Counted from the stretch's first letter, positions 16,057-38,199 are shown. The stretch: 64,000 bases of DNA from Octopus sinensis (GCF_006345805.1 NW_021837037.1:1-64000); one strand, 5' to 3'. Translations and numbers: made by a program. Notes: a model not told the origin generated them from the sequence alone.

Positions 16057-16093
16057 ATGAAAAGAATTCTATTCATATTATCTGTAATTTGCG
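16057..16093 (+). CDS. Gene A exon 1 (signal peptide MKRILFILSVIC-G)
   Basis: Context ctacaATG; donor G|gtaagg. The upstream sequence aligns with that of B exon 1. Confidence 0.8.
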
Positions 16094-19000
16094 GTAAGGT
16101 GTTACTTCATAAAACAGCGCTCATAAATGACGGTTCACAGACACCAGGTAGAAGCAGGCGCATGCAAATGCATACATGTGTTTATATAGGTTTGTATGCT
16201 TGATTGCATGCATATATGTATGTAGGTGTGTATGTACACACACACACACACATAGTATGCATGACTCTATGTATGTATATCTAGATAGATATATACATAG
16301 ATAGACAGGTGACGTTAGCGATTTTTTTTTCTTCTTTGGACATTTCACTTTCTCCTTCCAGACGAAGAGCTATGCGCGAAACAATGTTTTCTTTGTACAC
16401 GTTCTCTTGTTAATGCTTACATGTTTAAATGAATTGAATATCCGTTTGTATGTTTGAAAATTCCACACACCCTTGGCCTTGTCTCATTTTGACACATTAT
16501 ATTTAACACACACATACGTATGTATGTATGTATGTATGCATGTATGCATGAATGTATGTAAATATGTAGATATATGTATTTTATACGTTCATATATATAT
16601 ATATATATATATATATATATACATAGCAGAGTAAAGTAATTTATTTTATAGAAGGAGCTTCTACAGGACTAGAACTGTTTCATTCAGATGAAATCTTCAG
16701 GAAGCTGGCTGTCAAAATAAGGTCTGGTATTTATACATTTAGGCAGATTTAATGGGATTGTGGTGGGGGGCGTTTTGGGGGTAATTTGGTATTTAGGTGA
16801 TAAACAGGGCACAAGCTATTGTTCTTAGGGGAGTGGTCATATATATATATACATATACATGCACACACTCACACGCACATACACACACACCTATATATAT
16901 ATATATATATATATATATATATATATATATATATATATATATACATCAGCTCGAGAAAGCCTTCGCATATCTCCAGAGTAGTCAATGTACTTGGATCATT
17001 ACTAGAGATTTGAACTGCATCATTCGAACTATTGAGCCTCTGGAAGAGGGATACAATGCCCCAAACTGCAAAAATAAATGTGCACGCAGTGGCCCACCCT
17101 GAGTTTCGTCGGCCCGTGAAGAACGCCACCTACACCGGCACCACTTGTAGGTCCAATACTGGAGGGTAAATGAATCAGCTGGGCCGGCCCTAATGACTCA
17201 CCACAGAACCATTTGTGCAGAGGCTGTTTGACGTCCTAATAGTGGCCCCATCGCCCTAGATCATCACCAGCGGGTACGCCTGCAGTCCGTTTCAACACGT
17301 CAGAACTGGTGATCTTCGCCCTTGAGTAATCTCAGACAGTCTTTTCTGACGAATGTCGATATTGCATTTCTGTGGCAGATGGCAGTGCTAGTATTTGGAG
17401 AAGGCGTGATTGTCATGGCGATGGCTGTGTGGTGGCGAGAGACTCGTGGGCAGGATAGAGCATCATGGTATGTGACTGGATTGAACTCAACTAGAAACTT
17501 TGACCGGTGGCCTTCCAAGACATCGGTCAAGGACGGGGCAATTAAATAGCTGTTGCTTGCTAGATTGACCAAATTTTAAGACCTCACATTTTGCCATAAT
17601 TTGCCAATCATGGGAATCACGCGTTCCAATAAGACAACGCCCGTGCCCCTACTGCTAGGCTGATAACATACCTCCTCCAACAGCATAATTTCCAGGCACT
17701 ACCATGGCCTGTCCTATGTCTGGACGTGAACCACATAAAACACCTGTGGGGCGAAATCCAATGAAGGCTAAATGACATCCGTCCAACGCCGGCAACTACG
17801 GTACAAATCACTGAAACTTTAACAGTGCCTGGGCTGTTATCCCAATGAACTACATCAATCGTTTTTGCGCATTTAGTGTACAGAGGTTGCCTGCTGGTAA
17901 TCAACGCTAACAGTGGTCACACGAGATACTGAGGTCATTTTTTTTATCCAAGACACTGCATCATCACGTGACGTCAAACATGTTTAAGGATATGGCGATT
18001 TGTCATTAGGAAAGAACCGTTTCTCTATTTCGTACGTTTATGGTATCACTTTTGTGGTTCAGTTGATATGTAATTGCATGTTTATGCCTGTACCTATGTA
18101 TACGTATATGTATATGCATATATTTATATGTATATATATGTTATTATTACTGGATTGAAGTATCTTAAATTGTGGTCACTTTGAATGTTTTAATTTTAGA
18201 CGCTTACCTACCAGAAGAGTTTCAATACCTTTTTATTATTAGATCATTTTTATTCTTGTAAATGTGTTATATATTTCATAAACTTTTTCTACATTCTGCG
18301 ATTTGATATAAAAGGTATCGGTTTTTAACATCCCTCCTCAAAGCCACATGCCAGATATATGAAATCTAACATAGAAGTCAATACTTTGGAAGGAATAGAG
18401 CTAATATATCCACTGGCTATATGCTCAGAACACGTAAAATATATACATTCCGTTAAATTTACAAAGGAAATTCGGCAAGATATCGTAAAAATGAATATTA
18501 AACCATAAATGTAGCAATGGACGATCGTACAAAAAAGGATTCCAAACAAGATGAGGACAAATATCAATCAAATGTAAATAATGTAAATAATTATTACTGC
18601 GTTACCAATGAATTAGAAAATAAATTTAGTTGAATAATATGTAATTCTTAAAATTGTAGGTGCCACAGCCTCCAAAGTCTGCATGACAGTAGCCGAGAAA
18701 GAGTGCAAATACGCTCTGCTAACTTATCCTGTAAAGACTCCCGACATTCATTTCTGCAGGTATCTTTTTCTCCTTTTGGTACTAATATTTGTATTTCTTT
18801 TATAGTACTATCGTTCATATTTGCAACTTCGTTTCACAAAATCAATTGTTTGTAATGTATTACACACAGAGGAACAAAAAAATGTGTTCCGCCACCAGGT
18901 GGTTAAATTTTCCATCAATCTATTCCCGAAACAAAATATTATAGCATTTGCTCGTGGTGCCCCAGCATGGCCGCGGCCTTCAGTCTAAAACATTTTAAAG

Positions 19001-37200: not shown

Positions 37201-38199
37201 TATATATATATATATATATATATGTATGTATATGTAAGGTAGGTACAATAAATTGAGGGTGAATACTTGATAAACGTACGTGCACCTGTATATGCCAGCT
37301 AATGGCAGATGTGAGAGGATATATGTATCAAATTAAATAAATAACAGGACACAAGTGTGTCGCGGTAAACATGTGTACCGCGACATCCTTTGTGTCCTGT
37401 TTTTTTATTTAATTTGATACATATATATGTATATGTATATATGTATATATATATATATATATATATATATATATATATATATATAAGCATATATATATAT
37501 ATGCATATATATATGTATGCATATATATTATATATATATATATATATATTATATATATATATATATATATCATAAATTCCAACTTATTTTTGCAGTTCAT
37601 TAACTCTACGTCAAGCTCTCTTCTGTCTGTGAGCTATTCCCCCAGGTTAGACGCAGTGCTCTGACGAAAGAAAACTATGTTTGCATTATTGGGCGAGACC
37701 ATTCTCATACTGTATATAATTTCCTGTGGGCATATGGTCTAGTTGTTAGAGCAGCGGACTCGTAGTCGAGGATCGCGGGTTCGAATCTTAGACAGGGCGA
37801 CGTGTGTATTTATGAGCGAAGCAACTAAGCTCCATGCACCTCCGGCAGAAGGTAACGGCGAAATTCTTCTGACTCTCTCGCCACAACTTTCTCTGTCTTT
37901 CCTCTTGCAGCTCACCTGCGACAGGAGCCGGTCCGTCGCAGGTGGGGAAACTATACGCCAAGGAAACCGAGAAAGCGATCCTTATGAACCAGGTAAGGCT
38001 CGAGAAGGAACAAACATATAATTTTCTAGAAAATAGCAACGATATTAATGAAATATGTCCGTCAGTTTTAAATGTATTACTGATTAACATATTTTTTGTC
38101 TTGAATTCTTCAGATGACCTGCCAGAACCCAACTCAGCACCATGCATTCTAACATTAAACAGTATCTTATTGGCTGTTCCTGTATGGGCCATATTTTAG
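25166..38199 (+). CDS. Gene B (complete copy), long form: 103-aa signal peptide + 6-Cys domain + GPI-like tail
   Basis: Exons 25166-25202, 31527-31626, 32783-32871 and 38114-38199. Translation: [103 protein letters not shown]. About 47% identical to A by manual alignment. The link from exon 3 to the distal exon is inferred. Confidence 0.72.
25767..25857 (-). ncRNA. Type I hammerhead ribozyme, intact core (copy 60063-60153)
   Basis: UUUUAG-CUGAUGA-GUACGGGACA..long stem II..UGUCAUUGUAU-GAAAC-GAUU-GUA/CUAAAA. Confidence 0.85.
26876..26966 (+). ncRNA. Type I hammerhead ribozyme copy with C3G core mutation (copy 61172-61262)
   Basis: UUUUAG-GUGAUGA-GUAC...GUAU-GAAAC-GAUU-GUA/CUAAAA. Confidence 0.8.
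27580..27960. mobile_element. Composite SINE insertion inside the inverted pLTR (27797-27960 is a minus-strand copy of the 688-850 family)
   Basis: Contains the ggccatgctggagcaccgcc tail motif and the reverse complement of the tRNA-derived SINE. Confidence 0.75.
30351..30390 (+). ncRNA. Hammerhead-like motif with atypical core (CUGAUGC); inverted copy at 27340-27379
   Basis: CCA-CUGAUGC-A-GUCAC(AGGAGU)GUGAC-GAAAG-AA-CUC-UAG. It is sense to the RT ORF, in the 3' repeat. Confidence 0.5.
31527..31626 (+). CDS. Gene B exon 2
   Basis: aaattctag|GT...TGCAG|gtatat; encodes [33 protein letters not shown]. Confidence 0.9.
32783..32871 (+). CDS. Gene B exon 3
   Basis: ttttgtcttgtag|A...CCTC|gtaagt; encodes [29 protein letters not shown]. 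Confidence 0.9.
32958..32995 (+). CDS. Gene B proximal terminal exon 4a ([12 protein letters not shown], soluble 87-aa form)
   Basis: Acceptor ttttacttttgctggactgtattttcag| after an 86-nt intron. It starts ATAACAAACC, compared with ATAAGAAGCC for A exon 4. AATAAA at 33413. Confidence 0.6.
38114..38199 (+). CDS. B-type distal terminal exon 4b (GPI-signal-like tail), copy 2
   Basis: ttttttgtcttgaattcttcag|AT; encodes [33 protein letters not shown] lies ~30 nt after the stop. Confidence 0.8.

Follow-up and report, generated by a model that had tools for sequence, protein, structure and literature searches.

A 64,000-nucleotide stretch of the Octopus sinensis genome (GCF_006345805.1 NW_021837037.1:1-64000), hereafter called the window, carries two paralogous four-exon genes, A and B, which are very probably real genes. 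Each encodes a predicted product of 103 amino acids in which a domain with six cysteines lies between a hydrophobic N-terminus and a hydrophobic C-terminus. It is considered moderately probable that the window holds a tandem array of old paralogues coding for ligand-binding six-cysteine modules which are attached to the membrane by a glycosylphosphatidylinositol (GPI) anchor. The exons and the candidate poly(A) signals of the two genes are the following.

16057-16093, + strand: gene A exon 1 (37 nt), ATG and putative signal-peptide segment MKRILFILSVIC, GT donor
18660-18759, + strand: gene A exon 2 (100 nt), Cys1 to Cys3 and motif AEKECKYALLTYPVKTPD, AG and GT sites, family-profile E 2.2e-11
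20766-20854, + strand: gene A exon 3 (89 nt), RRLELYE and Cys4 to Cys6, AG and GT sites, family-profile E 1.1e-7
21392-21477, + strand: gene A exon 4 (86 nt), linker, Cys7, hydrophobic tail and stop codon TAA
21506-21511, + strand: candidate poly(A) signal AATAAA of gene A, 29 nt past the stop codon
25166-25202, + strand: gene B exon 1 (37 nt), ATG and signal-type segment, GT donor
31527-31626, + strand: gene B exon 2 (100 nt), Cys1 to Cys3 and the motif, family-profile E 3.7e-10
32783-32871, + strand: gene B exon 3 (89 nt), RRLWLFE and Cys4 to Cys6, family-profile E 1.4e-10
38114-38199, + strand: gene B exon 4 (86 nt), linker with N-S-A, Cys7, hydrophobic tail and stop codon TAG
38231-38236, + strand: candidate poly(A) signal ATTAAA of gene B, 31 nt past the stop codon

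The window was scanned for the family motif in six frames, which placed it at approximately 18.7, 31.6 and 53.0 kb, and the flanks were then read for gene models. The motif, AEKxCKYALxxYPVKxPD...CRRLxLxE, is present in both A and B. The two genes are also alike in exon lengths (37/100/89/86 nt), in intron phases (1/2/1) and in having GT-AG boundaries at all introns, and their products share the cysteine spacing C-x7-C-x16-C-x8-C-x7-C-x11-C, followed 11 residues on by Cys7 and then by the hydrophobic C-terminus. All of these features had been listed in a preliminary description made from the sequence alone, and each proved exact when the sequence was read. The sequence tggaattcgaacatatg, which is common to A and B, directly follows the stop codon and precedes both candidate poly(A) signals. 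The genes escape detection based on open reading frames (ORFs) because they are too small. A six-frame scan of the window with the family profile found no further copies, its matches being the known exon-2 and exon-3 pieces only.

The introns of A and B align collinearly with 68-76% identity, so the pair represents an old duplication of whole genes. The coding sequences are 64.7% identical (35% of bases differ) and the proteins 47%. The ratio of non-synonymous to synonymous substitution rates (Ka/Ks) between A and B was 0.65 overall and 0.82 in the mature part, and that of the tail exon, 0.51, was the lowest outside the signal segment. Despite this divergence, A and B retain their exon lengths, reading frame, splice sites and all seven cysteines. 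When 110 random substitutions, equal in number to the observed A-B difference, were put into the A coding sequence in 50,000 trials, 0.8% of the resulting sequences were free of stop codons, 0.02% kept all seven cysteines and none (0/50,000) did both. The orthologue of B in O. bimaculoides is 78.8% identical in coding sequence and 77.0% identical in intron 2; the intron alignment has 109 gap columns, whereas the lengths of the four exons are equal. In these comparisons the cysteine scaffold, the length and the splice plan are fixed, and the remaining residues change almost at the rate of the introns. Secreted disulfide proteins that evolve fast typically show such a pattern, in which the scaffold is fixed and the surface free.

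A phmmer search with A against 1.84 billion representative proteins gave 12 matches (E 6.7e-91 to 8.9e-4), all 12 of them from Octopus (O. vulgaris, O. bimaculoides and O. sinensis), in agreement with the lineage restriction proposed earlier; as far as these searches reach, the family appears to be confined to this genus. The relatives, referred to here by P numbers, are named 'uncharacterized' or 'hypothetical', one of them, P0004 (UniRef A0A0L8GPX5), having been given the automatic name 'GDNF/GAS1 domain-containing protein'. The entries of the family include LOC128249887, LOC128248155, LOC128249786/787/789/883, LOC118763774, LOC115219848, CAI9735841 and CAI9735827; literature searches on the LOC identifiers returned nothing relevant. 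Every copy of the domain has the spacing C-x7-C-x16-C-x8-C-x6-8-C-x11-12-C, with YP...PD between Cys2 and Cys3 and C-x-R-L after Cys3, and A and B fit this pattern exactly. The six cysteines and one arginine are invariant in the family alignment. Single-domain relatives with a hydrophobic tail are P0005, P0008 and P0010, and tail-less members are P0003, P0009 and P0012. The domain is present in two copies in P0004, in three in P0002 and in nine in P0003.

The gene plan of the family consists of a signal exon and exons of 100 and 89 nt, with phases 1/2/1; those members that bear a tail have a tail exon in addition. A and B have this plan, as do six gene copies in O. vulgaris and one unit, the third, in O. 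bimaculoides (37/100/89/86 nt). It is also found in P0010, annotated by NCBI, which is approximately 30% identical to A and has exons of 40/100/89/95 nt in phases 1/2/1. The four-exon plan is thus the plan of the family and has been accepted by an independent annotation pipeline.

The tandem arrangement suggested by the preliminary description was found in the window and also in O. vulgaris and O. bimaculoides. Comparison of the window with itself gave an identity of 99.925% over 29.2 kb between 522-29703 and 34804-64000, with a repeat period of 34,290 bp, and the window thus comprises 1.87 tandem-repeat units, each with A and B. The units and the further gene copies are as follows.

522-29703: tandem unit copy 1, aligning to 34804-64000 (self-comparison)
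34804-64000: tandem unit copy 2, the remainder of which is cut off by the window end (self-comparison)
50347-50383, 52950-53049, 55056-55144 and 55688-55773, + strand: gene A', base-identical to A (sequence comparison)
3826-3911, + strand: copy of B exon 4, part of the preceding unit's B gene, of which exons 1-3 fall ahead of the window
59462-59498, + strand: copy of B exon 1, part of the second unit's B gene, of which the later exons fall past the window end

The presence of A twice, as had been described, is due to this near-identical duplication. The B-type pieces had been attributed to three loci, and this part of the description did not hold, as they make up a single gene, in which introns of 6.3 and 5.2 kb containing repeats and long ORFs set exon 1 and exon 4 apart from the pair formed by exons 2 and 3; two further pieces belong to the neighbouring units, which are cut off by the window ends. 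Between the two unit copies there are 14 differing sites, of which 7 are substitutions and 7 small indels; several of these fall within homopolymers or microsatellites. Their near identity could reflect a very recent duplication, gene conversion, or a false repeat or haplotype duplication in the assembly. The equivalent units of O. vulgaris diverge from the window by 3-8%.

In O. vulgaris the locus (OX597831.1, L002) contains three A-B units, 92-97% identical to the window, with four exons in every gene copy. Exon 2 of the second A copy (L002 37562-37661) is frameshifted by a deletion of 1 nt, in the second B copy Cys1 is replaced by Tyr (L002 49643-49742), and an extra exon-2-like piece upstream (L002 308-407) has a stop codon inside, so some members of the array are decaying. 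The third B copy differs from the other B copies by 13-14 non-synonymous and 0-1 synonymous changes.

The O. bimaculoides locus (CM046618.1, L001) has at least three units, each with an ATG/signal exon and two with a tail exon of their own. LOC128249887 is represented by six NCBI isoforms (P0002 and P0013-P0017), which join three cassettes, that is, copies of the exon 2 and exon 3 pair, under one signal exon and one tail exon. Within or just past this gene there are four ATG/signal-type exons (L001 10001, 18243, 21925 and 31282) and three tail-type exons (21244-21311, 34602-34687 and 44125-44241). As the isoforms use only some of these, the three-domain model overlies what appear to be separate four-exon units. 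Three small family genes, including that of P0010, are found in tandem approximately 300 kb away on the same chromosome (L003); they encode proteins of 108, 107 and 112 amino acids and lie on the opposite strand. The family cluster thus extends over at least approximately 360 kb of the O. bimaculoides chromosome.

The structure of full-length A was predicted by AlphaFold together with 27 family sequences. The model is all-helical, with a predicted local distance difference test score (pLDDT) above 90 for residues 20-75, and contains helices at 3-34 (continuous from the signal segment), 44-55 and 60-73, a linker of low confidence at 81-91 and then a terminal helix. The domain is therefore confidently modelled as three helices with two cysteines on each, which agrees with the disulfide-type helical domain anticipated in the preliminary description. 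A single-sequence AlphaFold model of A (pLDDT 51.7) was not used.

Both ends of the products have the character that had been assigned to them, with a signal-type hydrophobic segment at the N-terminus and a short linker and terminal hydrophobic tail at the other end. The N-terminus of A reads MKR-ILFILSVIC-GATA, and hydropathy supports the layout of both N-termini as predicted signal peptides of 15-16 residues. Both the N- and the C-terminus are hydrophobic in A, B and five relatives; the two tail-less members that were checked do not have such ends. A and B end 29 residues past Cys6; their last 11 residues have a mean Kyte-Doolittle value of 2.6-2.7, and no residues follow. An N-S pair (N-E-S in A) is conserved 20-22 residues from the end, before the tail cysteine, in A, B, P0001, P0002 and P0004, and in B it is part of N82-S83-A84, the N-S-A that had been pointed out earlier. 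A signal peptide, a polar linker with N/S, approximately eight spacer residues and a terminal hydrophobic end make up the classic layout of a GPI signal. From the hydrophobicity of the tail and the conserved N-S site, GPI anchoring of the A and B products is judged probable, and not more than that because the hydrophobic core is short and the small-residue site of A imperfect.

Among known domains, the one that the octopus domain most often matched was the N-terminal domain of the repulsive guidance molecule (RGM) proteins (RGM_N, PF06535). Pfam gave no match to A and only a weak match of RGM_N to whole B (E 0.072), and a PDB sequence search with a profile of A and B gave no match. Among ten relatives scanned, the score for RGM_N summed over domains reached 37.9 bits in P0001 and 29.1 bits in P0006, the cutoff being 24.2 bits, and four more matched weakly. 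When 26 domains were taken singly, RGM_N was the only Pfam family that more than a single one of them matched, with 13 domains doing so at E<=1 (best 2.1e-4). When a profile built from these 26 was compared with 177,635 PDB sequences, its top four matches were chains of the RGMB N-terminal domain (E 0.058-0.4). The cysteine spacing of RGMA and RGMB, taken from PDB sequences, is C-x4-C-x22-C-x8-C-x7-C-x21-C, in which C3-x8-C4-x7-C5 is identical to that of the octopus domain. With the cysteines held fixed, the real RGMB score was reached by 1/5000 shuffled sequences and the RGMA score by 35/5000; as shuffled non-cysteine residues so rarely reach the real score, the match is more than a cysteine pattern.

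RGMA, RGMB (also called DRAGON) and RGMC/hemojuvelin (PDB 4UHY, 4UHZ/4UI0, 4UI1) resemble the octopus proteins in having six cysteines and three helices, predicted in the octopus domain, in the residues around the central C-x8-C-x7-C (D..FC.aLr.Y..C), and in combining a signal peptide with a GPI-type C-terminus, for which the octopus tail is a candidate. They differ in that the cysteines span 68 residues in RGM and 55 in octopus, that the segment between Cys5 and Cys6 has 21 residues in RGM, where the alpha-3 segment, through which BMP/GDF ligands are bound, is approximately 10 residues longer, and 11 in octopus, and that the octopus domain occurs alone or in strings of 2-9, is encoded by a two-exon cassette and belongs to a tandem gene array. 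In RGM proteins the C-terminal domain, which binds neogenin, adopts a partial von Willebrand D fold and contains a GDPH site for self-cleavage. No RGM_C match was found by Pfam in A, B or the ten relatives, and no GDPH in A or B. As this domain, the GDPH site and a stretch that follows Cys5 in RGM are lacking, the octopus proteins are not RGMs. The RGMB N-terminal domain, a three-helix bundle with three disulfides, binds both BMP2 and GDF5; RGMs carry a GPI anchor (PMC7354924). According to a 2022 review, the RGM-N and RGM-C domains have not been reported outside RGM (PMC10084454), and literature searches for RGM_N or PF06535 outside RGM returned nothing relevant. True kinship between the octopus domain and RGM_N is regarded as about evenly balanced.

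Several observations weigh against the reading of A and B as GPI-anchored, RGM_N-like modules. The single domains all score below the Pfam RGM_N cutoff (13.7 bits for the A domain), the C1-C2, C2-C3 and C5-C6 spacings are unlike those of RGM, and the RG(D/N)L...H stretch after Cys5 of RGMA and RGMB (RG(D/N)L.YHSAV), which we take to be located at the BMP interface, has no counterpart in A or B. Comparison of the family with RGM_N by hhalign gave a probability of 31% (P 5e-4, 32 columns); RGM_N is the nearest known domain, but the match is weak. The interpretation in the preliminary description was largely right, but its novelty was overstated because unnamed Octopus relatives are already present in NCBI and UniProt and a candidate known domain exists. 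A Foldseek search of the PDB with the full-length A model had a best E of 3.5 and retrieved neither RGM nor GFR-alpha chains; it was probably spoiled by the helices of the signal and the tail, which the query included. Word-indexed protein searches with A and with B gave zero matches, as did one with the 26-domain alignment, but the exhaustive phmmer search found 12 relatives, so the word index misses the family. The most hydrophobic part of the tail has only 11-12 residues, and A is without a clean small-residue triplet at the candidate cleavage site. Ka/Ks is high, not only between A and B but also between orthologous copies (0.4-1.0), so constraint beyond the cysteine scaffold is weak and most residues are drifting almost freely. 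To these are added the decaying second copies of A and B in O. vulgaris.

Some of these observations could be accommodated by other explanations. The six-cysteine domain may be a new, lineage-restricted fold, its resemblance to RGM_N being convergence on a short helical hairpin with C-x8-C-x7-C; this is quite possible, though not the outcome expected. The sub-threshold scores of the single domains, the hhalign probability, the failure of Foldseek to retrieve an RGM chain, the three of five cysteine spacings that are unlike RGM and the longer alpha-3 segment of the latter are all consistent with it. It has to be set against the fact that RGM_N is the sole Pfam family matched repeatedly, that RGMB chains head the PDB search, that non-cysteine residues add to the RGM score in the shuffle test, and that the number of cysteines, the number of helices and the GPI context are common to both. 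The name of P0004 points instead to a divergent domain of the GDNF receptor and GAS1 type, as GFR-alpha and GAS1 are likewise helical, cysteine-rich extracellular proteins with a GPI anchor. The GDNF/GAS1 domain (PF02351, SM00907) has ten cysteines, however, compared with six in the octopus domain, which is about half its size; PF02351 was not matched by A, B or the ten relatives including P0004 (E up to 10), nor by the 26 single domains (E up to 1), and no GFR-alpha or GAS1 chain was found in the PDB at E<=10 with the family profile or with P0004. The lead given by the name was thus not reproduced, and this origin is very improbable. As to the tail, it is rather unlikely that it is something other than a GPI signal, with the protein being secreted together with its tail or held in the membrane by it. 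The short core and the imperfect site of A would suit this, and the tail-less P0003, P0009 and P0012 would simply be secreted, but the layout of A and B is the classic one, and conservation of the tail exon is seen both in the A-B comparison (Ka/Ks 0.51) and in P0001, P0002 and P0004.

The status of the genes themselves can also be read differently. It is improbable that the window adds no functional genes, its copies being decaying duplicates that are not expressed or, in part, artefacts of the assembly; the 14 differing sites in 29.2 kb would fit a false repeat duplication or an uncollapsed haplotype, and Ka/Ks near 1 and the two damaged O. vulgaris copies would fit decay, but in the window A and B are intact in all exons, splice sites and cysteines, the array is real in that O. 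vulgaris has three diverged units and O. bimaculoides at least three, and the frame of the old A/B pair has been preserved far more than chance would allow. A somewhat unlikely possibility is that A and B are cassettes of one long multi-domain gene running across the array, the inner signal and tail exons serving as alternative first and last exons or being relics. Exons 2 and 3 together have 189 nt and are in phase 1 at both ends, the LOC128249887 isoforms skip exon-1-like and tail-like exons between their three cassettes, B- and A-type cassettes spread over 69 kb are strung together in the O. vulgaris model P0001, and P0003 and P0004 have nine domains and two. P0001 looks like a prediction artefact, however, as it mixes B exon 2 with A exon 3 and is without a signal peptide. 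The tail exon of A and the ATG/signal exon of B are also intact across the old A/B split and the three O. vulgaris units, AATAAA lies downstream of the A stop codon, and NCBI annotates single-domain four-exon genes of the family (P0005, P0008 and P0010). The long gene and the separate genes are not exclusive, and the earlier statement that there are two genes is upheld by the gene models but qualified in that there may be products other than A and B, since models of relatives string 2-9 cassettes.

Other small cysteine-rich proteins were compared with the family. Ly6/uPAR proteins such as CD59 have a small cysteine-rich ectodomain of approximately 70 residues, a signal peptide, a GPI tail and tandem gene clusters, but their all-beta three-finger fold with 8-10 cysteines differs from the octopus domain, which is predicted to be all-helical, has six cysteines and gave no Pfam match to them; membership of this family was rejected. 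Attractin of Aplysia and the pheromones of Euplotes have six cysteines, form short helical bundles, evolve fast and are lineage-restricted, and by analogy they are possible functional counterparts in recognition or signalling. They differ in cysteine spacing and motifs (IEECKTS in attractin) and in being soluble, in contrast to the tailed octopus proteins, and no Pfam or PDB sequence match to them was found. Attractin, saposin, ShK and odorant-binding-type six-cysteine families were dropped as candidates, there being no Pfam match and the fold or cysteine spacing being wrong.

According to the favoured reading of A and B as separate genes for GPI-anchored modules, the 103-residue precursor would consist of a signal peptide (exon 1 and the start of exon 2), the six-cysteine domain of approximately 55-60 residues (exons 2 and 3), a linker with N/S and a hydrophobic end of 11-17 residues (exon 4). 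The precursor would enter the endoplasmic reticulum, where three disulfides could form in the three-helix domain, the tail would be cut at the N/S site and the protein transferred to a GPI anchor. Cleavage of the tail would remove Cys7 and leave a six-cysteine module of approximately 66-68 residues on the outer face of the membrane. There the module would most probably serve as a fast-diverging unit for binding a ligand or partner, possibly as a co-receptor or decoy for a secreted ligand. This role is proposed by analogy with the BMP/GDF-binding RGM_N of GPI-anchored co-receptors, and BMP/GDF-type ligands would be the first candidates, though confidence in the ligand is low.

As exons 2 and 3 are phase-symmetric, splicing between neighbouring units can link their cassettes without loss of frame, giving multi-domain forms. 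In P0001, P0002, P0003 and P0004, which have 2-9 domains in series, the codons at the junctions agree with the prediction for a join of exon 3 to exon 2. The junction codons of P0001 (G after an A-type exon 3 and R after a B-type exon 3) match those predicted from the window sequence. Multi-domain chains may be made in vivo or may be prediction artefacts. A more speculative extension, which we think unlikely, is that the array works as a cassette system in which promoter choice, splicing across units and the choice of terminal exon would generate a repertoire of GPI-anchored and secreted proteins with one to several RGM_N-like modules. If so, this would be the first use of the RGM ligand-binding module alone, and the products could act as co-receptors or decoys for BMP/GDF-type or other ligands in octopus-specific tissues. 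The phase-symmetric cassette in a tandem array in any case offers a testable route to variable domain number. Kinship with RGM_N, if true, would place this domain outside RGM proteins, where according to PMC10084454 it has not been reported, and would point to a lineage-specific expansion of possible modulators of the BMP/GDF pathway in an animal with novelties in its nervous system and body plan. If it fails, the family would be an undescribed, fast-evolving group of three-helix surface proteins, restricted to Octopus as far as these searches reach. The A/B family is also a worked example of micro-exon families hidden in cephalopod genomes, with relatives left unnamed or merged into doubtful models.

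The DNA of the window is AT-rich, and TA microsatellites and repeats are abundant. A tandem repeat of approximately 336 bp is found at 34468-35256 (and at 1-968), where the long alignments between the units break and overlap; the alignments suggest that its copy number is unequal in the two units. Direct repeats of approximately 590 bp at 8057-8646 and 12805-13386 are 97% identical. Between them, within 8057-13386 (also 42345-47675), are two long ORFs on the + strand (8864-9967 and 9973-10986) which by eye have the look of a Penelope-type retroelement but gave no Pfam match. The region 8057-13386 has a strongly negative GC skew. The O. vulgaris units have no long match to it, and this may account for their smaller size (24-30 kb, compared with 34 kb in the window).

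Pfam scans of nine long ORFs of the introns and flanks gave zero matches; judged from motifs seen by eye, these ORFs look like fragments of retroelements or transposons, and the introns of B look as if they had been stretched by insertions resembling transposable elements. Inverted repeats in B intron 1 (26998-27550 and 30179-30729, 84% identical) enclose ORFs, among them one at 29367-29927 with a GIY-YIG-like motif by eye and no Pfam match, and an apparent transposable-element insertion at 26998-30729 has lengthened this intron to 6.3 kb. A run of minus-strand ORFs in B intron 3 (35588-37142, also approximately 1300-2850) has reverse-transcriptase-like motifs and no Pfam match. A minus-strand ORF fragment in A intron 2 (19306-19569) contains, by eye, the mariner/Tc1-like transposase motif PYSPDIAPSDFHLF, likewise with no Pfam match. 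A intron 3 contains a long (AGT)n/(GTT)n microsatellite at 20880-21110, which differs by 6 nt between the unit copies.

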